From assembly GCF_030028105.1 (NCBI RefSeq), contig NC_092398.1, positions 28,676,424 to 28,740,423 on the forward strand: a stretch of 64,000 nucleotides of DNA, given 5' to 3'. The stretch comes from Mobula birostris. Taxonomy: Eukaryota. A model generated the notes under the pieces. That model was not told the DNA's origin. It saw nothing but the letters and a program-made list of their open reading frames with translations, and did no database searches. Of the stretch, positions 1 to 52,400 are shown in pieces (positions within the stretch are counted from its first letter, which is position 1; every line of letters starts with the position of its first letter). Made by a program: the position numbers and the translations under genes.

Positions 1-1905
1 AGAAGTGTTTCAGGAATCTTTGAAGAATGGTTCCTTACCCCCTACTCTTTCAGAGGCATCTATTTCACTTCTTCTTAAAAAGGACAAGGACCCGACTCAA
101 TGTGGATCATATCGCCCCATCTCACTTTTGAATGTGGATGTGAAAATTTTGGCTAAAGTGCTTGCGTGCCGTTTAGAACGCTCCCTTCCCTAGATAATCT
201 CAGATGATCAAACAGGTTTTATTAAAAATTGCCATTCTTTTTTTAATATCCATCGACTGGCTGATGTGGTTTATTCACCGAGTGATTCTCTGAGTCAGGA
301 GGTTGTTATCTCCTTGGGTGCGGAGAAGATGTTTGATAGAGTGGAGTGGGTATACTTGTTTAGAGTTTTGGAGAAATTTGGATTTGGCAGAATATTTGTA
401 GCCTGGGTTAAGCTATGATATCACTTGCCTTTAGCGTGTATACAGATAAATTATTTTCGATCGGACTATTTCCCATTAACACGCGGCACTCGCCAAGGCT
501 GCCCATTGTCCCCTCCTCTTTTTGCAATTGCAATTGAGCCTCTTTCTATTGCACTTTAAGTCAACTACATTATTTCAAGGTGTTAGGAGAGGGAACGTGG
601 AACACCGTGTATCCCTATATGCTGATGACCTCTTACTTTACGTTAGCGACCCTGTAGGTAGCAGTCCTGCTATTGCGTCATTATTAGGTCAACTTGGAGC
701 CTTCTATGGCTATAAACTGAACCTTCAAAAAAGCAAATGATTTCCCATTAATAACTTGGCCCTACAGATCCGACAGGAATCTTTGCCTTTTCCTTTATCT
801 CAAGATGGTTTTGTATACCTATGAATACATGTTACTCGCTCTTTTACATCTCTGTCTGAAGCTAACTACAGGCCTCAGGTTGGCCAAATGAAGGCTGATT
901 TTGAGAGATGGTGCAGTTTACCCCTTACTATAGCTGGGAGAATTCAATCAGTGAAAATGACTATACTTCCCAGATTTCTTTATTTGTTCCAGTGCTTGCC
1001 AATTTTCTTATCTAAGTTATTTTTCAAATCAGTCGACCAAGCTATAACCTCTTATATTTGGGAAAATGAGGTCCCAAAGGTTAATGAGTGCACTCTCCAA
1101 AGAGGTCATGACGTAGGTGGAACGGGCCTTCCTAGCTTTGTTCATTATTACTGGGCATCAAACATTCAAAAGGTATTATTTTGGCTCCACCGGCTAGATA
1201 TAAACTGGTGCCCGCTTGGGACACGGTCTTGCCACTCCTCGTCTCTCCCAGCTTTAGTGTATTCTTCCTTACCTTTGAAATCCTCTCAATTCACATCTAA
1301 CTCGGTCGTGCTCTCCACCCTCAAAATTTTTAATCAATTTCGCTCCACTGTAAGTTCACATCAGCTTCAGTTTTGGGTCCCATTCATAGAAACCATCTAT
1401 TTCTTCCCTCCACACTCAATTCATTTTTTAGACAATGGGGTTTGAACTGTCTTATACGCATTAAGGATTTGTACACTGATAACATATTTAATAGTTTTGA
1501 TAACCTGTGCAGTAATTATGGCCTTCTGCATAATCATTTTTTAAAATACCTGCAGATTCACCACTTTGTCAAGGAAAAATTTCCCTGTTTTTCTGATCTA
1601 CCCCCTGCTATATTGTGGGAGAAACTCACTCATAGCTTTAATAATAAAGGGCTGATCTCTGTACTATACTCTCAGCTGATGTCCTTGGGAGTTCAAGATC
1701 TAAACAAAACTAAAACTAGGTGGGAGGTTGATCTTGGTATGGATCTGGTTGAGGAATATTGGGCAAAAGCATTGAATAGGGTTCATTCCTCATCATCATG
1801 TGCTAGACTGGGGCTCATACAATTTAAAGTTTTACACAGGGTACATTTATGTAAAACCAGCCTTGCTGACATATATCCTGGGACAGATGCTGGCTGTGAC
1901 ACATG
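1..1905 (+). mobile_element. L1/Tx1-type LINE ORF2 (reverse transcriptase) fragment, degenerate
   Basis: [24 protein letters not shown] and SLYADDLLLY motifs, broken by stops and frameshifts. Confidence 0.9.
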
Positions 1906-2439
1906 GACTGTTCATAAATCTGATGGCAGAAGGGAAGAAGCTTTTCCTGAATCCTTGAGCGTATGCCTTCAGGCTCCTGTACCTCCTCCCTGAAGGTAGC
2001 ACTGAGAAGAGGGCATGTCCTGAGTGGTGAGGGTCTTTAATGATGGATGATGCCTTTTTGAGGCATCACTCATTGAAGATTCCTGAATGCTAAGGAGGCT
2101 CGTACCCATGATGGAACTGACTGAGTTCACAACTTTCTGCAGCTTCTTTCAACCCTTTGCAGTATCTCCACCCCTCCCCCCATGTGCAGCCAGTTATACC
2201 TCTCCACGGTAAATCTGTAGAAATTTGACATACCAAATTTCCTCAAACTCGTAATGAAATATAGTCACTGTCGTGCCTTTTTGTAACTGCCTCGACATGT
2301 AGGCCCCAGGACAGATCCTCAGAGACATTGATGCCCAATAACTTGAAATTGCTCACTCCCTCCACTTCTGATCCCTCTTTGAGGACTGGTGCGTGTGTTC
2401 CCTTGTTTTGCCCTCTCTGTCAGCCTATGCCACACAGCC

Positions 2440-2965
2440 TGCTTGAACATCGCTTTGAAAACAAAACTTTAATTCCACTTCCCACTCCCATGCCATGGCC
2501 TCCTCTTCTGTCAGGATGAGGCCACACTCAGGTTGGAGGAGTAACATCTTGTATTCTGCCTGGGTAGCCTCCAACCTGATTGCAGGACCACCGATTTCCC
2601 GAACTTCCAGTAATGCCCCCCCCCACTTCATCATTCCCCATTCCCTTTTCCCCCTCTCACCTTACCTGCACATCACCTCCCTCTGGTGCTTCCCCCCTTT
2701 CTTTCTTCCATGCCCTTCTGTCCTTTCCTATCAGATTCCTCCTCCTCCAGCCCTGCACCTCTTTTCCCAATCAACTTCCCAGCTCCTTACTTCACCCCTC
2801 TCCACCTCCTAACTCTGACTCCTCAACTTGTTTCTCCAGTCCTGATGAAAGGTCTCAGCCTGAAACGTCGTCTGTACTCTTTTCCATAGATGTTGCCTGG
2901 CCTGCTGAGCTCCTCCAGCACTTTGTGGGTGCTGCTTGGATTTCCAGCATCTGCAGATTTTTTTG
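2440..2965 (+). mobile_element. Penelope-like element 3' fragment
   Basis: End of GIY-YIG coding sequence (RLEE.HL...LGSLQP) plus a pyrimidine-rich tail and the gaaaggtctcagcctgaaacgtcg terminal motif shared with other copies in the window. Confidence 0.75.
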
Positions 2966-2980
2966 TGAAAATAAACTTAC

Positions 2981-3238
2981 TCGTCAGAGTTTGAACAGCC
3001 TGGTGAACGATCCCCATGGCAAAAGGCATGTCATTAACATAGCGGGCAACATTTCTGATAATCTTTTGATTGCGGTTCAGATCGTCCACGAAAGACTTCA
3101 CAAGTGGACTGATGGCCACAAACTTTCCTGTAGTATAATTAAAGCAAACAGCCGCTTCGCCATTGTAAGCAAACTGCAGGGTAGCCATTGAGAACTCCGA
3201 ACCTTTACCAGAGAAAGTAATTTGACTGATGTGCATTC
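2981..3238 (-). CDS. WB: MHC W-category beta chain gene, exon 2 (beta1 domain); downstream exons lie left of the window
   Basis: 258 nt open exon, acceptor tttgcttgccag, donor A|GTAAGT, phase 1/1: GMHISQITFSGKGSEFSMATLQFAYNGEAAVCFNYTTGKFVAISPLVKSFVDDLNRNQKIIRNVARYVNDMPFAMGIVHQAVQTLT. Motifs match MHC beta1/class I alpha2. No Ig exon is visible in the window to confirm this. Confidence 0.8.
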
Positions 3239-3439
3239 CTGGCAAGCAAATAATAATCGATCCATTAACCATTTGTGAGAGTGAAACGGCTCATTTTAAA
3301 ACCGTAAAATTAATCAACCTGAAACAACAAATTTGTCTCTCCCTTCTGTGGATACCACACCATTCTGACAGCAAAAAGGTGCTACTCCTCTAGAGCCACC
3401 TCTCCCTCCCACCGTAAAACTCCAATAGTTGGGATTTGG

Positions 3440-4370
3440 TGGTGGTGCTGCTGACCCTTCACCCTCACTCTCTGCACCCACCTCTTCCTCAGTTCGATGC
3501 CCATGTCCTCACCCACCTCTTTGCCCAAAACCCTCCTCGCCATTGAAGTGCCCTTCCCTCAACAACTCTCCCCACAGACATCTCTCCTCACCGTCCACAC
3601 CCAACTCTCCACCCACCCCCTCTCTCCCTACCCACCCTCAGTGACTACTTCCCTCCCCAAACATCCTTGGCAGTCCCTCCCCACCCACTCACCCATGGCC
3701 CCCTCCCCTCCCAGTCTCCGTGCCCTCTATCCTCCCCACTCTCTGCACCCCCACAACTCCACTCCTCAGCCTTCCGTCCCACACTTAGCACCCCTCTCCC
3801 TCCCCACACACCTTTGGCACCCTAATTTCTTCCCTACACAACCATCCCCAGTGACCCCTCCTCTTCCACCACCCCCTCAACAATACTCAATCCACCTCCA
3901 CTCCCTCCCTTCCTGCTCTCTCTTAGTGCGTCCTTCCCTTCCCATGCCCGTTCTGTGCCCTCTCTCCTCTCCTTTGGAAGCCCCTCCTCTCCCATGATGC
4001 CCACTCCAGTACCCTCCATTGGTGCCCCCTCCTCCCTACCTTCCCTTTGCACCCCCTTCCCACCCTCCTTTGGTGCTCACTCCCCACCCTGCCTCAATGT
4101 CACTCCCCTCTCCTCCCCACCCTCCATCGGTACCCATTCCCCTCCCCTCCCCTCTTAACCCTCCCTCAGTTCCCCTCCCCACCCTCCCTTGGTGCTACTC
4201 TCTCCACCTTCCTTCAGCGAGGTCTCCCTTTCCCTCCTGACCTTTACCCTCCCCTCCCTCCCTAGTTGCCCCCTTCCCTCTCTTGCCCACCCTCCCTCAG
4301 TGTCCCCACCCCCCTCTACCTCCCTACGCTCCATCGGTGCCCCCTCCCCCGGCGCCTCCCATCCCCGGGG
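3440..4370. repeat. C-rich low-complexity tract in WB intron 1
   Basis: About 900 bp dominated by C/CT runs on +, so G-rich on the WB sense strand. Confidence 0.9.
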
Positions 4371-4770
4371 CGCTGCGCTCCTCACCCAGGGCAATGGAGC
4401 CGTTGTGGAGGAGGAGGAGGAGGAAGGCGGCGAGCAGAGAGGGAGAGCGGCGTCGCCTCACGCCGGCCGGCGGCTCCTGAGACAGCGGGAGGAGCAGCTG
4501 GCTCACGGTTCGCGGAGACGGCATCATTCCCCACATCCCTTCCGCCGAAGGCTGAGGACCTCGTCACACAGCCGCTACGCGCGAAACCGATCGCCAGCCG
4601 GCAGGTCCCGTAACGGGAGGCGATCGATGTCGAAGTTTCCCCGACTGAGCGGGCGGCCGCTGCCACAGACAGGCGGGGCGAGGCGGGAGGGAACGCCTTC
4701 TGTTTCCACATGGCGGTTATTCTCAACGAGACTCAACAACACTAGACGAAAGGTGATTGGGATACCGGCT
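4330..4770 (-). promoter_or_regulatory. CpG-island promoter/exon 1 region of WB
   Basis: Dense CpG, GC boxes (4650-4690), YY1-like ACATGGCGG at 4708-4716, ATTGG at 4756-4760 and a TGACG half-site at 4562-4566. Confidence 0.7.
4386..4536 (-). CDS. WB: MHC W-category beta chain gene, exon 1 (long leader)
   Basis: MWGMMPSPRTVSQLLLPLSQEPPAGVRRRRSPSLLAAFLLLLLHNGSIAL plus phase-1 donor G|GTGAG at 4385, inside a CpG island. It splices in frame to the exon at 3238. The start could be 4536, 4527 or 4524. Confidence 0.72.
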
Positions 4771-4800
4771 GAGAGGAGCGTGGATGGGGTCGGGTAATAA

Positions 4801-5200
4801 CAGGTGAGGGGGAGGTAGGTGTGTGGGTGGGACACCAGGTGAGGGGGAGGTAGGTGTGTGGGTGGGACACCAGGTGAGGGAGAGGTACGTGTTTGGGTGG
4901 GATACCAGCTGAGGGGAGGTGGTTGGGTGGGTGGGATTCCAGGTGAGAAGGGAGGTGTGTAGGTGTAATACCAGGCGAGGGGGAGGTGGAATGGGGGGAA
5001 AGCAGGTGAGGGGGAAAGTGGGTGGATGGGATACCAGTTGAGCCATAAGGTGGGTGATAGGGGGAGGGAGTATACCAGATGAGAGGGACTGTGTTTGTGT
5101 GTGTGTGTGATGTGTGTGTGGAGGGGGGCTACCAGGTAAGAGGGGATAGCAGGTGTTTGGATGGTAGACAGGTGGGTAGTGGATGGGGATATGCCAGATG
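4801..5200 (+). repeat. G-rich minisatellite, ~35-bp unit
   Basis: caggtgagggggaggtaggtgtgtgggtgggacac occurs exactly at 4801-4835 and 4836-4870, followed by progressively degenerate copies. Confidence 0.9.
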
Positions 5201-5574
5201 AAGGAGAAGGTGTGAGGTTGCTCCATTTTCCATTCCTATCAGATTCCTCCTTTTTCAGCCTTAACCGCTTCCACCAATCACCTTCCAGCTTCTTATCCCA
5301 AAACCTCAACCCATCCCACCCACCTTCCCCCTCTCCTGACCTCACCTATCACCTGCAAGCATGTACACCTTCCCCACCTCCCACCTTCTTATTCTGGCTT
5401 CCCCCACCCCCCACCTTTCTTTCCAGTCCTGGTGAAGGTTCTCGGTGTGAGACGTTGATTGTCCATTTCCCTCTCTAGACATTGCCTGACCTGATGGGTT
5501 CCTCCAGCATTTTGTGTGTCTTACATTTATGTAGCATCTTTGAAGACATTCTGTGTCAATTAAATGTGTCATCA

Positions 5575-13358: not shown

Positions 13359-13632
13359 CCCAAACTGCACATCTCTCCAGGACACCCCTGTGCTCCAGTT
13401 GAGAAGTATAGGTGCTCCCCCTGCTGGGGTCAACGCTGACATGAAGTCTGAGTTGGAATATGTCAGTTTGGCAAAATGCTGCTCCTGAACATCTCCTGCT
13501 TGATGGCTTCGCCATTCCGCAGCCATGCTGTGTTGACGTCCGTTGGGTAAATTCCATCCACTCTGTACATCAGGACTAAGGGCTTTACTCCCACGTTCAG
13601 CTGTGTTGACGTTATGGCAATGGAACGTTTCA
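13359..13632 (-). pseudogene. Second WB-like gene, disrupted beta2 (Ig-C1) exon
   Basis: Acceptor ccactgcag, donor TGG G|GTAAGG. Reads VKRSIAITSTQLNVGVKPLVLMYRVDGIYPTDVNTAWLRNGEAIKQEMFRSSILPN / frameshift / DIFQLRLHVSVDPSRGSTYTSQLEHRGVLERCAVW. 274 nt; both canonical Ig cysteines are replaced (Y, S). Confidence 0.88.
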
Positions 13633-16600
13633 CTGCAGTGGAGAGAAACCATAAGAAACAGGAGCAGAATTAGGTCATTCGGCCCATCGAGTCTGCTCTG
13701 CCTTTCCATCATGGCTGATTCATTATCCCTCTCAACTCCATTCTCCTGTCTTCTTCCCAGAACCTTTGATGCCATTACCAATCAAGAACTAACAACCTCC
13801 ACTTTAAATACACCCAATGACTTGACCCCCACGGCTGTTTGTGACAATGAATTTCACAAATTCACCACCCTCTGGCTGAAGAAATTCCTCCTCGGCTCTG
13901 TTCTAAAGGGACGCACTTCCATTCCGATGCAGTGCCTCAGTATTACTGAGAATGCTCAGTACAGGAGAGGGAATATCACGTTATAGCATATTGGTAAGGT
14001 CACCTCCATAGTGCTGAGGCTATGAAGACTGCCCCAGCTTCTGTGCTCCATGCCCGCTAACATGATAAACTGATAAGCCAGGCTTTGGGCTGCTCCAGGG
14101 TTCGGATCTAAGGATCATTTTTGGTTTGGAATGCTGTTGTCTGCATGACTTCTTTTTGCTTTCTCTTGCACATTGATTGTTGTTTTTTCTTTAATTAGGT
14201 TCTTTCAGGTTCCTTGCTTTGTGGCCACCTGTGAGCAAACAAATCTCAATGTTGTTTAATTTTTACATTCTTTGATAACAAATGCACTTGAATCTTGAAT
14301 CAATGTACAGATCTGGTCACTCTCCTGTAGGAAGAATTTTATTAAATGAATAAGGTGCAAACAGGATGTTACCAAGACAAGAGATTATAAGAAGCTGGAT
14401 AGGCTGGGTCTTTACCTTCTCAATTGTAGGAGTTTGAAATGTGACCTTATAAACTTCTGAGGTTTATAAGACCACTCTTGGAATATTGTGTTCAGCCATG
14501 TTTGCTTCATTATAGGAAGGACATTGACACTTTAGAGAGGTTGCAGATCAGATTTTTCAGGATGTTGTCTGTTCTAGAGAGCATGTCTTATGAGGACAGT
14601 TTGAGCAAGCTAGGGATTTTCCCTTTGGAGCAAATAAGATGAAAGTTGACTTCATAGAGGTGTAAAATGATAAGAGGCATAGATCAAGTAGATAGCCAGA
14701 AACTCTTTCCCAAGGCCAAAATGCCTAATACAAGAGGGCATAATTTTAAGGTGATTGATGGGAAGAATGGTGGGGGGGGGGGGGAAGATGTCAGAGATAA
14801 GTTTTTACACAGAGTGGTGGGTGTGTGGAATGCACTACCAGGGTGGTGGTGGAGGCAGATACATTAGGGGCTTTTAAGAAACTCTTAAATAGGTACATGA
14901 ATGATAGGAAAATGGAGGTCTATGTGGGAGTGTAGAGGTAGATTGATCTAGGAGTAGGTTTAAAGGTCTGCACAACATCTTGCGCCAAAGGGTCTGACTG
15001 TGCTGTAATGTTCTGTGAAGTCATAAGGGACATAGAGAAGGTGAATACAATCTTTTTCTCCAGGTTGGGTAGAAGTGAGAGCGTGAGAAAGAAAGACTTA
15101 TAAAGGACCTGAGGGGAAACTTGTTCCACATGAAGTCATGTAGTTATTGGGAATGAGCTGGCAGAGGAATATTTGAAGCAGGTATAGTTATGATATTTGA
15201 AAGGCCTTTGGGCCATTAAAGATTAAATGATCTAAAGATTAGCCTCACTTGTCACATGTACATCGAAACACATATCGAATCACAAACACAAGAGCTTCTG
15301 CGGATGCTGGAAATCCAGAGCAACACTTTGTGTGAACGATGATCACAGACTGAGGATTGCGCTGCAGGCCTTGCCATGCTTTTGAAGCCTTCGTAGCATT
15401 CCCACATGGATAGGAAAGATTTAGAGCAGTGGTTCCCTTCCTGGGGTTCTGAGATGCCTCTGTTAATGGTCGGGGTCCATGGCATAAAACAATGATGAGA
15501 ACCCCTGGTTCACAGGGACATGGACCAAATGCAGGTTTCTGTCCTGCTGTTTGAAGACTATTGAATCATTCCCTAGTATGACAAGATGGGCTCTGGATCA
15601 CACCGTGTGCCTCTCCATGGCCTTACAGCTTATTGTCTACCTACTTACACTCTGAAACTGTATCTCTTTGTTCTGTATTCTGTTATTGTTTTATCCTCGT
15701 ACTACCTCAATGCACAGTTGTAATGAAATGATCTGCATGGACGACATGTACTGTACCTTCATTAGGCTACTCGTTCAGATTAATTCAGTTCAAGGTGGAA
15801 GATTATTTATCGTCATTCTTCAGTACACGAGTGTAAAGGAAAACAAAATGATTGTTATTTCCAGTCCAACACAGCACAAAACAATACAATTAGAAGACCA
15901 GTAAATATAAAAGCAATTCTATAAAACAGAACGTACAAGTGAGAGTTTGAGTGCAGCCATATATACTCAAGATTAGCTTATACACAGGGACTGATTCTAC
16001 GTACACAAAGTGACAGTAGGTACAGGATTCTGTTATCCTCGGCTTCATAAGTCCAGGGAAGACAATCTCCGGCCCTGCCAAACATGTGAGACTAAGTCAC
16101 GAGCCCACCCCGAAATCCCCTGTTCGTGTGTAATTTGTTACCCTGTTACAAATGAGTGCATGAAATTACAGACAGTACAACGCATTCAGTTAAAAGATTT
16201 AGCTTTACAATTCTTAACTTGACGAAAGGGTTAGTGAAGAAAGAACAAAAAAAAAGAAAAGGGCCCATTTTTGTGAAGCAGTCTAATGTGCACAAGTTGG
16301 ACTCTCGGTTTCCCCATCGGTGATCCTCCATTGATCACCCTGGGCTTTGTCGAATCATGGTCCTGCTCTGGGTCCAATCCTATGGCCTCTTCCCTCCCAC
16401 GTCCTCTCTCTTCATCTCTCTCTGACAAGAGCCCCAAGCCCAACCTTAGTATCTCTCACCAGAGAAACCTCCCCTAATCCGACCATCCTAATTGGATGGC
16501 ACACAATTCTCCTATTTCTTATCTTCAACAATCATCATCATCATCATCAGGTGCCATGCCCAGTTTGAGCTTTGACTGCCGTGGCCCACACACTCCTGTT

Positions 16601-24858: not shown

Positions 24859-25124
24859 CTTGCATTTGTAGAGTTGGCGTCATAACTTCCATGATGTTAT
24901 GATGTAGACAGCTTGGCATTCAGGATCAGAACTTCCTTGGTACGGTTGACTTCAAAGACAGGGTTTGTGGTGGTTCAGGCCACTGATAAAGTCTTCCAAC
25001 AGTGGAATACTGGCCAGAAATTTCCTGACAGAGAAATCAAAATAGGTGATGTCTTTGCCATCATAACCAAATCGCAGGCCTGTTTCTGAGAACCACAGAG
25101 CTGTGTAGGAGCCGACTGTCTTCC
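24859..25124 (-). pseudogene. Second WB-like gene, disrupted beta1 exon
   Basis: Acceptor tgttcatcag, then GKTVGSYTALWFSETGLRFGYDGKDITYFDFSVRKFLASIPLLEDFISGLNHHKPCL* (stop at 24952-24954). A beta1-like C-terminus (HHNIMEVMTPTLQMQ) is in another frame. The exon is 266 nt (not a multiple of 3) and the donor reads G|GCAAAT. A 35-aa core aligns without gaps to WB beta1 (13/35 identical). Confidence 0.75.
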
Positions 25125-45965: not shown

Positions 45966-46460
45966 AGTGAAGCCAATCCCGAGACCCGGCGAGCCGGCAC
46001 CTGCCAGAGACTGCGCATGCGCTCGTCATCCAGCCGGCCGCCGCTGATTGGCTGCCGCGGCTTCCCGCCAGAGACACTCCCCGCCCTCTCTCCGGCACGT
46101 GACTCCGCCAGCGGCCGGGCCGCTCCTTCACTCTCTTCGGCGTTGCCAGAAGCGGAGGAGCGAGGCCGGGGCTGGGACTAGGGCGGTACGTTGGGCGGGG
46201 AGAATGGCGGGGGCGTCGCCTCCTCCTGCCTCCTGCCTCTTACCTCCAGCCGCTCTTTGGTTTTGGCGCAGTCGCAACCATGGGTCGATATGGCGCCGCC
46301 TGGGCGCTCCTCCTGCTCCTCGTCGCTCGTTCGGGAACTCACAGCTCGGCGGCCGGTGAGTCGATTCCTGTCGCGGGGATCACCGCTCTTGCTGCAGACT
46401 GTGGGATCCTGCACAGTTCGCATTGCTGGGGTCATCAACCGGGTCGGGGGTGGGGTGTTA
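45965..46460 (+). promoter_or_regulatory. CpG-island promoter of WA
   Basis: Dense CpG in a CpG-poor background. CCAAT at 45973, NRF1-like TGCGCATGCGC at 46012-46022, CGTCA at 46024-46028, Y-box CTGATTGG at 46044-46051, E-box CACGTG near 46096, and several GC boxes. Confidence 0.75.
46280..46355 (+). CDS. WA: WA exon 1, signal peptide [25 protein letters not shown]
   Basis: Strong Kozak (accATGG), hydrophobic core, small-residue c-region, phase-1 donor G|GTGAGT at 46356, located inside a CpG island. Confidence 0.85.
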
Positions 46461-49400
46461 TGGGTTGGATCTTGTTGTTTAAGGGTTAAACTTCCTGGTA
46501 AGACCTGTCACGTATCCCGTGATGGGAATAAAGAACAGGCAGAAATAGAAAACACTTTGGAGTCCAGTATTACTATTAACTAGTAATATTTATTAGAAAC
46601 TACTCAATACAGTAATATAAATGTAGATAAATCAAACAGGTTAGCAATGATTATTTATGTAAGTAAGTATATCAGTAAGCGTGGAAATATAGGTGAAAAA
46701 CCAAGCTTCTTCAAGTCTAGGGGTAAAAAGATACTGTCTTACGATGATGAGTAAAGTTCAGTTCAGTTCATGGTGTTCCGTTGAGTAGTGATGGAGAGAG
46801 AGGGAGGGAGAGAATTGGGTCTTCAGGTGAGCTGACACCGTTGATCTTCTCGTTGTCCTCCAAAATCCTTTAAAGTCACAGACTGTGACTTCAACAAAGG
46901 GGACCAGTTTTCTGTGGTGGAGCTATCGCCCAGGCAAGGGTGGACACATGGCCAACTCCCCACCGGTCACTGCCTTTTCTTTTCACTGCAGGAGCCACTG
47001 ATCGATCTGTCTGATCGATCCTCCAAAAACCCACTTTTTCTGCAGGCATAACAAAGCTCATTCAGTGTCCAAAACACATGTCTGAGGTTATATCATCTGA
47101 CCTTCTATTTATCTCACTGTACTGAGTATCAACTGTCATTCAAATTACTCCTCCTTCCTTTCTCTGTGTAAGAAATGCAAGCAGGCAAATGTCCTTGAGA
47201 AGTATCAACATGCTGCTGAAAAATCATAACATTGATTGTCCATATAATAACGCCGCCTTCAGTCACCATAGCAACTTACGAGCTGCTCGGTGCCATCTCC
47301 AACTCAGCAGAAATCCAAAAGTTAGCCAGTTCTTTCTCATGCCTTAAAGTGACAGTCCAACAGTTAGTCTTTGTCTGTCTGTCTCTCTCTCTCTCTCTTT
47401 TCAAAACAATATATCGGTGTTAAATAACTCTCTCTCTTCTCTTTTCAAAAGCACAGTTCATAGGGGTCATTCAGGACCCCATCACAGACCACACTTGGAG
47501 TATTGTGTTCAGTTCTGGTTGCCTCATTACAGAGCCACGTTTAATAGCAGGATATTTAAATTGGGATGTGGAAGCTTTAGAGAGTATGCTGAGGAGATTT
47601 ACCAGGATTAGAGGGCCTGTCTTGTGAGGTTGAGCAAGCTAGGGATTTGCTGTTTGAAGTGAAGGAGCATGAGAGGTGACTGAACAAAGATGTACAAGAT
47701 AAGAGGCATTGATAGGATGGACAGTGGAAGACTTTGCCTCAGGGTGGCAATGGCTAACATGAAGGGGCATAACTTTAAAGTGTTTAGAGGGGGAATGTCA
47801 GAGGTAGTATATTTAGGTGTGGAACCTGGCACTGCCAAGGTTGTCATTAAGGACACTTAAGAGACTCTTATAGGCACAGAGGTGACAGAATACTGGAGGC
47901 TTCTGTGTGAGGGAAGGGTTTGATTGATCGAAGGGTTGGCACAACAATGTGGACTGAAGAGCTGGCACTGGTCTATGCACATGGTTGGTGGGATCTTGCT
48001 GTGGACACTCAGGGATGGGGACGGAGGAGTTGTGTAGTGGGATCTTGCCGTGCACTTGTTGGGTGGGGGCTGTGCTATGGATTGAATGGGAATTTGTTTG
48101 ATTGTGCCTTGCCCGTGTTGCATGAATGCTTACCACGTGCAGACTGGATGGGGATTGTTGTAGTGTTACAGACTTGTACAACACACAACTGGGCCCCTTT
48201 GCCCACCATGTGTTTGCTGATGTTTTTGCCCATCTACGCTAATCCCACCCTTCTCCCCCCCCCCCACCCACAGACACACACATTAGGACCATATCCTGAT
48301 GTTAAAGGTACTTTGAATATAATTACAAAATAGGCTGAAGGAACTAGGATACATTAGAGGAAATTTTAAAAATTAGGAATGAAATTAATAGTTTGGCCAC
48401 ACAAGAAATCAGGAAAAATTTAATGTTTCTGAAGCAGAGACACTATGAAAGTGGATCTAAGTCTATGAAAATACTGGCGTGGAAACTGGAAAAAAAATAG
48501 CAGAAAATACAATTCATAGAATTAGGGATTCAAGAACAAAAATAAAAAAATAAGGCAAGTGAAATTCAAGAAGCTTTTGAAGTGTTTTACAAAACTCTAC
48601 ATTCCAAAGTTCCAGGGGGAAGCATAACCCAAATGGACACCTTCCTGAATTCGCTAGTTACCCACTTTAAGCGAAGAACAAAATAGAATGATGACTGATG
48701 ACATAACTGAAGTTGAACTAAAAGCTGAAGTTAGCAGGCTTAAATTAAACAAGTCACCAGGATCAGATGGGTATAAGGCAGAGTGGTATGAAGAATTAAA
48801 AAATAAGTTAATTCCTGTCTTACTCCCCACACTGAACTGGGCTCTAAAATAGGCACAAATGCCACCCAGCTGGAAGGAAATGATAATCCCAGCTATACCG
48901 AAAGAAGGCAAGGATAAAATGGAATGTGGGTCATTTAGACCAATATCCGTTCTTAATGTAGATCAGGGATCAGCAACCTTTTTGCCTCTGTGGGCCGGAT
49001 GGCGTATTAATGAGCGGACGGTGGGCCAGATAAATGACACAAAAAACTTGAAATATGGGAATTATCCATTTAAATACATCTAGTTATGTTTTGCCTCAAA
49101 TTAATGAATAACGCATGCTAGAAAATCATTTGTGCTTAACCAAGGATGCCAATTAGTAATCAAAGAACTCAGTTTAGTTTTTCTGTCCCACCATTGCTGG
49201 TGCCCCATCAGTTGTGAAGCCAATTAGCATCGACATGTTAAGTTTAATTCTGACATCATTTTCAGCAAAGCTTCAAAATTGTCTGCCCCAGTAACCGTGT
49301 CCTTCATAGGAATTAATTGAATAAATTCTTCAAAAATTTGAAAAGTTGAGGTCAGTCCTCGCACAAACACTGCAAGTTGAGCAGTGTCTCTCAAGTCTGT

Positions 49401-52400
49401 ACTCTCATTATGCGCAATTGAAAAAAATAATGCAATTCGTTGTGGGCATCCCTTTAACAACTTTTAACATCTGACATTTCTTCAACTCGCCATGTGATCG
49501 TTCTTGCTGACAGGCTGATAGATGCAAATAAAGATTTCTTTTCAGGACGAACAATATCCACTACTGTCCGTAAACATTCATTGACAAACTCTCCATTTGT
49601 AAAAGGCTTAATCTTTTCTGCAGTATGTTTTGAGACTTCGTTGCTGGCATGGGTATTTCCTTCATTGTCACTGCTTTTCCGCCATTCAGAGTCTACCTTC
49701 CTGCGTTTTGCATTCATTTTGCAAGTATCTCAATATTTGCTCGCGGCTGGTCAAAATACCTTTGAGGGCCGGATCTGGCCCGCGAGCTGTAGGTTGCCTA
49801 CCCCGATGTAGATTATAGATTATTTACCTCCATCGTGGCCAAACGATTAGAAGAGTTTCTACCCATACTGATACATAAGGATCAGACAGGGTTTATGCAA
49901 CAACGCTATACGGAAGACAATGAATGAAGAACACTTCACGTTATGGATCATATGCAAAAAAATAAATTTGAAGCCATAGTGATAAGCGTGGACGATCCTC
50001 CAAAAACCCACTTTTTCTGCGGGCACAACAAGGCTCATTCAGTGTCCACAACACATGTCTGAGGTCTATATCATCTGACCTTCTATTTATCTCACTGTAC
50101 TGAGTATCAACTGTCATTCAAATAACTCCTCCTTCCTTTCTCTGTGTAAGAAATGCAAGCAGGCAAATGTCCTTGAGAAGTATCAACACGCTGCCGAAAA
50201 ATCATAACACTGATTGCCCATCAAATAACGTCACCCTCGGTTACCATAGCGACTTACGAGCTGCTCGGTGCCATCTCCAACTCAGCAGAAATCCAAAAGT
50301 TAGCCAGTTCTTTCTTGTGCCTTAAAATGACAGTCCAACAGTTAGTCTTCGTCTCTCTCTCTCTCTTTCTTTTTCTCTCTCTTTTCAAAACAACATGTCA
50401 GTGTTAAATAACTCTCTCTCTCTCTTTTGAAAAGCACAGTTTATAGGGGTCATTCAGGACCCCGTCACAGACCACACTTCGAGTATTGTGTTCAGTTCTG
50501 GTCGCCTTATTACAGAGCCACGTTTAATATCAGGATATTTAAAATGGGATGTGGAAGCTTTAGAGCAGTGGTCCCCAACCACTGAGCTGCAGATCATGTG
50601 CTACCGGGCTGTGAGGAAACAATATGAGTCAACTGCACCTTTCCTCATTCCCTGTCACGCACTGTTGAACTTGAACATAGGGTTGCCAACTGTTCCGTAT
50701 TTGCCGGGACATCCCATATATTGGGCTAAATTGGTTTGTCCTATACGGGACCGCCCTTGTCCTGTATTTCCCCCGCTAAGGTAGAGCATTCCTATGAAAC
50801 CTTTCATGCCAAAATGGTGTGAAGCGAAGAAGCAATTATCATTAATTTATATGGGAAAAATTTTTGAGCGTACCCAGATCCAAAAAATAACCTACCAAAT
50901 CATACCAAATAACACATAAAACCGAAAATAACACTAACATATAGTAAAAGCAGGAATGATATAAATACACAGCCTATATAAAGTAGAAATAATGTATGTA
51001 CAGTATAGTCGGGAAGATGAAGGCAAAACCGATCTGTTGAAAAAAATCGACACTTACGTGCATGCGCACACAGGTGCCCGCCCAAGGCTTCATGGTCATG
51101 GTAGTCTTTCTTGGGGTAATGTGTCCTGGGATTTTACTGCTACTTTCATCCCTTATTTGGGAGTGAGAAAGTTGGCAACCCTAACTGTAACAGACATGTT
51201 GAGGTGAGTTTAACCCTACTTGAACCCCCCCCCCCCGGTTGGCCGATCCACAAGAATATTGTCAATATTAAACCGGTCTGCAGTGCAAAAAAGGTTGGGA
51301 ACCCCTGCTTTAGAGAGTATGCTGAGGAGATTTACCAGGATTAGAGAGCATGTCTTGTGAGGTTGAGCAAGCTAGGAATTTGCTCTTTGAAGTGAAGGAG
51401 CATGAGAGGTGACTTAACAAAGATGTACAAGATAAGAGGCATTGATAGGGTGGACAGTGGAAGACTTTGCCCCAGGGTGGCAATGGCTAACATGAAGGGG
51501 CAAAACTTTAAGGTGTTTAGAGGGGGAATGTCAGAGGTAGTATATTTAGGTGTGGAACCTGGCACTGCCAAGATTGTCATTAAAGACATTTAAGAGACTC
51601 TTATAGGCACAGAGGTGACAGAATAATGGAGGCTTCTGTGTGAGGGAAGGGTTAGATTGATCAAAGGGTTGGCACAACAATGTGGACCTAAGAGCTGGCA
51701 CTGCGATCCGCTGTTCTATGCACATGGTTGGTGGGATCTTGCTGTGGGCATGCAGGGATGGGGAAGGAGGAGTTGTTTAGTTGAACTTGTTGTGTGGGGG
51801 CCGTGTTATGGATTGAATAGGAATTTGTTTGATTGTGCCTTGCCCATGTTGCATGGACGCTTGCCACGTGCAGACTGGCTGGGGGTGTTTTAGTGTTATA
51901 GACTTGTACAACACACAACCATGTGTTTGCTGACATTTTTCTCCATCTATGCTAATCCCATCCTCCCCCCCCCCCCCCCGCACCACCATTAGGACCGTAT
52001 CCTGATGATACATGTACTTTGAATATACTTATACACATTGCCCCTTTAAGTGTCTGTCCAAATACCTTTTAAACGTAGTGATTGAGCCCATTTCCACAGC
52101 CTCTGCTGGCAGCTCATTCTAGATATCAACCATTCTTTATGTAAGAAAAAAAGTGTACCCCCTCGGATCCCCTTTAAAACTCCTTCTTTTCACTTGAAAT
52201 CAGTGCTGTCTTGTTTCCATTTTGTATGGATTGGTTGGGATGTTGTTGTGTAACTGCTGAGTGGGATCTTGTCATGTACACAGGGTTGGACCTGATCACA
52301 GAGTGGGATTGTGTTTGTGCTTTGTGCATGTATATAGATGGGTGAGTTATTTTTCGGTGAGACATTAGACACACTACATACAGAGTAGGGAACTTTTCTC

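Follow-up and report, generated by a model that had tools for sequence, protein, structure and literature searches.

A WB gene at the manta ray locus

The window, by which we mean the whole 64,000-nucleotide stretch of Mobula birostris DNA analysed here (contig NC_092398.1, positions 28,676,424 to 28,740,423), carries on its minus strand the 5' part of a W-category MHC beta-chain gene (WB) and on its plus strand a candidate WA partner gene. The WB gene was modelled by tblastn with M. hypostoma P0001 and M. birostris P0021 and P0034, and its parts are as follows.

4386..4536, minus strand: WB exon 1 (start codon, signal peptide MWGMM...NGSIAL plus G), a 100% match to residues 1-50 of NCBI P0021 and a 94% match to P0001
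3239..4385, minus strand: WB intron 1, CT-rich and of low complexity, missing from the spliced RNA contigs of sister copies
2981..3238, minus strand: WB exon 2 (beta1 domain), 258 nt, phase 1 at both ends
1..2980, minus strand: first part of WB intron 2 (whole intron ~9.4 kb), with a SINE-like repeat at 2900-2965 and broken LINE fragments at 5-740 (plus strand)
window -6441..-6722 (outside the window), minus strand: WB beta2 exon, C1-set (Pfam), 'ILPNRDGTFQ'
window -10050..-10154 (outside the window), minus strand: WB CP/TM exon, by tblastn
window -19366..-19452 (outside the window), minus strand: WB cytoplasmic exon, by tblastn

Leader, beta1, C1-set beta2 and CP/TM/CY thus lie on separate phase-1 exons, which is the plan of a class II-type beta chain. 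Exon 1 ends in the donor G|gtgagg, and an exon of its type is joined to beta1 in RNA contigs of sister copies. Exon 2 is bordered by the acceptor ttgccag|GA at 3238 and by the donor A|gtaagt after 2981. In beta2, the string 'LPNRDG' supplies the class I-like P57 and G61, and the class II-invariant W61 is absent.

The non-coding surroundings of these exons are rich in repeats and simple sequence. Just downstream of exon 2, the ~65-nt repeat at 2900-2965 has dozens of matches in the genome at 91–97% identity, with a summed depth across RNA contigs that is very high, in the tens of thousands, and looks like a SINE-like, heavily transcribed element. The LINE reverse-transcriptase fragments at 5-740 match Pfam RVT_1 below its gathering score and in two different frames. 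Intron 1 and the region upstream of the gene (3400-5400) are CT/GA-rich and of low complexity, with many long, meaningless Pro/Ser-rich ORFs on both strands, and a GC-rich stretch surrounds the WB start codon at 4536.

Exon 2 encodes a beta1 domain of the WB_DS1 lineage

The translation of exon 2 reads GMHISQ...LQFAYNG...AVCFNYT...IIRNVARYVNDMPFAMGIV and contains every string quoted in a preliminary description of this DNA. It scores 30.9 bits against Pfam MHC_II_beta (cut-off 20.9, E 3e-7), an MHC match that is not due to chance. An exhaustive HMMER search with exon 2 returned a single close protein, from Mobula hypostoma (87% identity), followed by WB_DS1-like proteins of white and basking shark (39–41% identity), and across shark and skate members of WB_DS1 the beta1 identity ranges from 38% to 42%. 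Among sharks, exon 2 is closest to the WB_DS1-like sequences of white shark in Dataset S1 of Okamura and colleagues, and it has the WB_DS1 hallmarks FAY[DN]G...FNY[TS] and LN. Position numbers used below (6, 12, 32, 35, 37 and 40) are those of Dataset S1; the residue numbers of our own query (Q5, A23, G26) form a separate series.

A sequence search of the PDB with exon 2 found weak matches to chicken class II beta (E 0.06), which we used for position mapping only; class II beta positions were mapped by a phmmer alignment to chicken BLB2, extended ungapped. An AlphaFold2 model of beta1, built on 15 relatives, has a mean pLDDT of 86.8, with strands at residues 4-11, 17-24, 27-33 and 38-41 and helices at 44-55 and 57-84. 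Searched against the PDB with Foldseek, this model has an MHC class II beta chain at each of its 50 best matches (TM 0.65–0.81).

Exon 2 is the beta1 exon of an M. birostris WB gene of the WB_DS1 lineage, within the W-category. The preliminary description had proposed a WB identity, and the proposal holds both in alignment with known WB beta1 domains, where exon 2 places in WB_DS1, and downstream, where a C1-set beta2 with the class I-like P..DG, a class II-type TM exon and cytoplasmic exons follow. Those same downstream exons were examined for a class I heavy chain or a non-MHC gene; neither was found, and what they encode is a class II-type beta chain.

The W-category MHC family, a proposed bridge between class II and class I, was described in 2021 (Okamura et al., PMC8713811), in a survey that took in sharks and skates and contained no myliobatiform rays. 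Exon 2 extends the range of known carriers to a myliobatiform ray. The manta WB gene is a further member of a known lineage and leaves the view of the family as it was.

Class I-type docking residues and a candidate WA partner

According to the 2021 paper, Q6, A32, G35 and D37 of WB beta1 are the equivalents of class I Q96, A117, G120 and D122, which surround W60 of beta2m, and such class I-type contact residues belong to the published definition of the W-category (PMC8713811). The corresponding codons in exon 2, with three other sites discussed in the next section, are listed here.

3153..3224, minus strand: underside-residue codons (Q6 at 3224-3222, A32 at 3170-3168, G35 at 3161-3159, and position 37, which is Ala, at 3155-3153), from the alignment and the complex model
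3144..3146, minus strand: lone Cys codon TGC (position 40), strand S3, two residues before NYT
3132..3140, minus strand: N-Y-T glycosylation sequon in the S3-S4 turn, read from the sequence
3024..3026, minus strand: Pro at the class II beta C79 position (second disulfide Cys), from the phmmer alignment to chicken BLB2 with ungapped extension

Only seven columns show no variation across the 15 sequences compared from rays, skates and sharks, and Q6, A32 and G35 are among them. Position 37, the published contact D37 (class I D122), is Ala in the present copy; close Mobula copies have A, V or T, and the other rays, skates and sharks aligned have E or D. The class I-type contacts reported in the preliminary description are therefore present at Q6, A32 and G35, all touched by Trp169 of WA in the model described below, but not at D37. 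They are a defining, published feature of the W-category and not a new one; what exon 2 adds is confirmation that conservation within beta1 is highest at the docking residues. In one paralogue, c25.59 (contig positions 25591681-25591935), Ser replaces the otherwise invariant G35 (FAYNSE).

The candidate partner lies in the same window, on the opposite strand.

46280..60667, plus strand: candidate partner WA gene (WA_DS10-like alpha chain, NCBI P0038), by tblastn at 95–100% to P0038
46280-46354, plus strand: WA leader, by tblastn
56839-57093, plus strand: WA alpha1, by tblastn; resembles the little skate WA DS10-like sequence in Dataset S1
58682-58963, plus strand: WA alpha2, by tblastn match; holds Trp169
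60494-60667, plus strand: WA CP/TM, by tblastn

P0038 has Y8, F57 and W61 ('LYLY', 'HLSFGKDW'), the published WA criterion being Y8, L55, F/Y57 and W61. The WA gene is 42 kb from the start of the WB gene, with a WB pseudogene between the two, so WA and WB do not form a tight head-to-head pair. This pseudogene is a second, diverged WB copy (13360-13633 and 24973-25092, minus strand), whose beta2 has lost both Ig cysteines ('LMYRV', 'YTSQLEH') and has a frame break. The helix of WA alpha1 (56839-57093) is strikingly hydrophobic, and the domain contains no Cys.

Modelled together, the WA ectodomain and beta1 gave an ipSAE of 0.71, where the best of three controls reached 0.01; a mark of 0.71 is reached by 51 of 78 solved complexes and by two of 108 mismatched pairs, and a pass at this mark may reflect recall of solved MHC structures and is blind to which WA pairs with which WB. 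Contacts agreed between runs at 92% or better (at least 92%), and the partner pLDDT was at least 78. In the model, beta1 strand S1 pairs with WA residues 28-39, and WA Trp169 (the W61 of 'GKDW') touches beta1 Q5, A23, G26, E27 and A28 in query numbering, where Q5, A23, G26 and the touched neighbours are Q6, A32, G35 and position 37 of Dataset S1. WA P0038, which lies in the same window, is the likely partner of WB beta1.

A missing disulfide and an incidental cysteine

The preliminary description had also noted that the groove disulfide (class I C101/C164, class II beta C15/C79) is absent, and this is borne out: position 12, the site of the first Cys, is Gly, and the site of the second is Pro. 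Beyond the present copy, the residue at position 12 differs between groups: G is shared by Mobula, stingrays and sawfish; skates carry C; and F, Y or I occurs in houndshark, blue shark, catshark and white shark. The first Cys on its own is kept in the skates and also, within the first 48 alignment columns, which end before the helix halves, in the Dataset S1 sequences of bullhead shark and dogfish. The second position is Pro in all DS1-type rays and skates aligned and Asn in sharks, and a helix Cys was absent from all DS1-type sequences of sharks, rays and skates examined as the lineage comparison. Because the disulfide is missing in every WB_DS1-type sequence examined, in sharks and rays alike, its loss is an old, lineage-wide trait that is not specific to this exon. 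The absence is already visible in published alignments; the searchable text and supplement of the 2021 paper mark the conserved cysteines and do not discuss their absence from WB_DS1 (PMC8713811). We regard the absence of the beta1 disulfide across the WB_DS1-type sequences examined as a modest new lead.

The lone Cys is a different matter. A single Cys does occur in AVCFN beside NYT, as had been claimed, but it is not conserved, close copies having Arg or Gly in its place. Position 40 is CGC (Arg) in the three other intact M. birostris copies and in a frameshifted one, Gly in M. hypostoma P0001 (and in the closest M. hypostoma protein), and Arg or Gly (CGC/GGC) in transcript contigs from two species; among sharks the residue is Q, R or K, and relatives overall have Arg, Gly, His, Gln or Lys. 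We also considered whether the Cys is unique to the present copy and rejected this, as M. hypostoma P0017 shares EAAVC, the only other copy with the Cys in that species. In the complex model the residue falls outside the WA interface. The lone Cys is a variable site on a surface strand, incidental and not a feature of the family. Shark WB_DS1 sequences and most rays keep the adjacent sequon as NY[TS], which skates lack (EYS). In paralogue c25.59 the NYT sequon is lost (DYA) and a helix Cys is present (LNCN).

A cluster of paralogues diverging in the helix

Manta rays carry at least five close copies of this beta1. The M. birostris contig holds four intact copies of the type (at 25.59, 28.68, 28.84 and 29.06 Mb), a frameshifted one (25.15 Mb) and two copies that belong to a shorter subfamily. 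When the present copy is compared with the 29.06/28.84 type, the exon is only 86% identical while the 300-nt intron flanks are 96–98% identical (Fisher P 3e-8). Classical class II beta chains are marked by high allelic polymorphism in beta1; the divergence measured here is that between paralogues of a single genome.

This excess of exon divergence falls mainly in the helix. By the Nei–Gojobori method, dN/dS against the c29.06/c28.84 type is 3.1–3.3 for the helix half (bootstrap P ~0.014, nominal and uncorrected), 0.45 for the sheet half and 0.45–2.7 for beta2. Whole-exon values of 1.0–1.84 were not significant (bootstrap P 0.11–0.47), so that the helix half against the c29.06/c28.84 type gives the sole nominal signal. 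Among seven Mobula sequences, helix residues 56-70 vary at 12 of 15 positions, compared with 32 of 70 elsewhere (P 0.02). These selection figures rest on small numbers and gene conversion could contribute to them; the case for diversifying selection on the beta1 helix, drawn from sequence comparison, is suggestive only. The present copy keeps the helix motif NVARYV...MPF, which it shares with sawfish and skates, and the 29.06/28.84 type has the derived KYVTCCVES. Within that derived motif, the sisters at 28.84 and 29.06 Mb have two adjacent helix Cys, a CC shared by M. hypostoma P0014. In beta2 these sisters read LPNWDR, with Arg for the class I-like G61 and a Trp two residues earlier.

The 2021 paper reports low variation for the W-category (PMC8713811). 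In contrast, divergence among the manta paralogues is concentrated in the beta1 helix and outpaces that of their introns, a further modest lead. One might speculate that in manta and devil rays the disulfide-less WB_DS1 lineage has expanded into a paralogue cluster in which selection diversifies the central helix and leaves the beta2m-like docking pocket unchanged, a scenario that we hold to be rather improbable on present figures. If it were true, W-category molecules would be a family of variable surface ligands and not monomorphic housekeeping molecules, with helices that are read by receptors or pathogens, or that line a hydrophobic non-peptide groove.

Expression and splicing

Four small public RNA runs were compared with the window over positions 2900-4600. 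All four contain transcript contigs that cover the leader or the beta1 exon, and in three of them one contig carries leader and beta1 with no room for the intron at 3239-4385; since single contigs join both exons without this intron, the contigs represent RNA. Contigs of one organism match c28.84 and c29.06 at 29 of 29 and 28 of 29 listed differences from the present copy, and those of a second organism resemble M. hypostoma in that position 40 is Gly and the leader is shorter by 6 nt. Sister copies are, then, transcribed and correctly spliced in two ray species, which is another modest lead. No contig of the present copy occurs in these four small runs, which do contain its sisters and whose contigs drop rare variants.

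The three NCBI isoforms of the present gene are all non-canonical. X1 and X3 start at an internal Met ('MATLQ') and are missing the opening bases of the exon, among them the ATG at 3236-3234, and X2 (P0021) joins the leader directly to beta2, skipping exon 2. Two private changes sit at the edges of exon 2.

3226..3227, minus strand: private AG inside exon 2 (GGT>AGT, Gly>Ser), which may act as a cryptic acceptor 13 nt downstream of the true acceptor; 3227 is G in all four close paralogues
2981, minus strand: private last exon base A (donor -1 G>A); G in all four paralogues

Splicing to the cryptic AG would remove the first in-frame ATG and put the leader out of frame, which would explain the MATLQ start, and the change at donor -1 would weaken the donor, which fits the skipping of the exon. 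The M. hypostoma counterpart has neither change and a canonical gene model. Going by protein models and DNA, we suggest that the present copy is probably spliced poorly or wrongly, and it may be on its way out.

The main competing view is that the gene is fully functional and canonically spliced, with the odd NCBI isoforms being errors of annotation that stem from near-identical paralogues and both G>A changes being neutral. We consider this possible, though clearly the less probable reading. Every exon found is open and GT/AG are intact at every junction, for which reason the copy may be functional; the intron part of the exon 2 donor is a perfect gtaagt; and X1 and X3 still join beta1 to beta2, so the donor of exon 2 must work at least sometimes. 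The copy has, moreover, kept the ancestral helix motif found in sawfish and skates, and it has kept the beta2 G61 that its expressed sisters have lost. Against this, none of the three isoforms has both the leader and a full beta1, whereas the paralogues and the M. hypostoma counterpart have both; the MATLQ start would seem to need the loss of at least the first 13 exon bases; and the four runs that contain the sister copies contain no contig of this one. Mis-splicing of the present copy remains the reading that we prefer.

The groove

The class II residues that hold the peptide backbone, W61, H81 and N82 in the DR numbering that we take from established knowledge, are L, A and M in this beta1 (ungapped extension of the phmmer alignment to chicken BLB2). 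As the domain is without these residues, a non-classical groove is plausible from its sequence. This was already stated for the W-category in 2021, in a paper that describes W subgroups without full sets of peptide-binding residues (PMC8713811).

The preliminary description had pointed to a helix rich in aliphatic and aromatic residues. The helix is moderately hydrophobic (54% over H2), but this is ordinary within the family, whose members range from 43% to 64%, and we rejected the idea that hydrophobicity sets this helix apart. The contacts with WA listed for the complex model run along one face of the long beta1 helix, at every one of its turns, and WA helix residues V92, L95 and M96 touch the beta1 floor at residues 4, 6, 22 and 24; these modelled helix-to-floor contacts hint at a narrow or filled groove.

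A further proposal is that a disulfide-less, hydrophobic groove of this kind would bind a lipid or some other non-peptide ligand, or else be closed with no ligand at all, and that the free Cys would be functional, for instance in covalent capture of a ligand or in dimerization. The loss of the peptide-backbone residues to L, A and M is in keeping with such a groove, as are the mostly hydrophobic residues at sites aligned to groove-lining DR beta positions (judged by alignment and knowledge of DR1), the likewise hydrophobic helix of WA alpha1, the modelled contacts at every turn of the helix with V92, L95 and M96 on the floor, and the Pro that every aligned DS1-type ray and skate has at the C79/C164 position. 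On the other side, the hydrophobic fraction of the helix is that of the family at large, and the central helix is hypervariable between paralogues, which fits a variably read surface better than an inert, closed platform. A functional Cys is at odds with the Arg, Gly, His, Gln or Lys of relatives and with its place outside the modelled interface. Taken as a whole, we think this proposal unlikely.

A proposed account of the manta WB gene

We think it probable that the locus is best described by a single account: a WB_DS1 beta1 exon that docks onto a WA Trp, has no disulfide, forms a non-classical groove and bears a variable Cys, in a gene copy that is probably mis-spliced. In this account beta1 would be half of a class II-style membrane-distal platform, consisting of four strands and a long helix, with its strand S1 paired with strand S1 of WA alpha1. 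The pocket formed by Q6, A32 and G35 would receive the conserved Trp (W61) of the beta2m-like WA alpha2, in the way that class I alpha2 receives W60 of beta2m. The lack of both an intradomain disulfide and the class II peptide-backbone residues would make for a non-classical groove. The private G>A changes at both exon edges would lead mostly to mis-spliced or exon-skipped transcripts from the present copy, with its sisters expressed normally.

There is very little to be said for reading the gene instead as a classical or conventional non-classical class II beta chain, for which the Pfam label MHC_II_beta and the NCBI product name 'class II histocompatibility antigen beta chain-like' would speak, or exon 2 as part of a class I heavy chain: the former is refuted by the missing C15-C79 pair, the missing W61, H81 and N82, a beta2 with G for the invariant W together with the class I-like P57 (PMC8713811), and nearest relatives in WB_DS1, and the latter by a gene layout in which, unlike the class I plan of alpha1-alpha2-alpha3 with soluble beta2m, sister copies have the leader spliced straight to beta1, and a separate gene encodes the alpha chain, which is membrane-anchored.

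Comparison with known MHC systems

The closest known system is WB_DS1 itself (Okamura et al., 2021). The manta gene is like it in its class II-type exon plan, in Q6, A32 and G35, in the 'LN' helix motif and the FNYT sequon, in P57 and G61 of beta2, in the absence of a helix Cys and in a linked WA gene with W61. The present copy differs in having Ala for Glu/Asp at position 37, Gly at position 12 and Cys at position 40, in belonging to a manta-specific cluster (at least five copies) with a helix that may be diversifying, and in its own private changes at both exon edges.

Compared with classical class II beta1 domains (HLA-DRB1, chicken BLB2), WB beta1 has the same fold, exon phase and place in a two-chain molecule, but it has neither C15-C79 nor W61, H81 and N82, its underside is class I-like and the alpha2 of its likely partner resembles beta2m. 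With class I alpha2 and beta2-microglobulin it has in common that the equivalents of Q96, A117 and G120 touch, in the model, the Trp of an Ig-like partner, as they touch W60 of beta2m; unlike class I alpha2, it has Ala at the equivalent of D122 and no C101-C164, is not fused to alpha1, and would face a partner that is anchored in the membrane.
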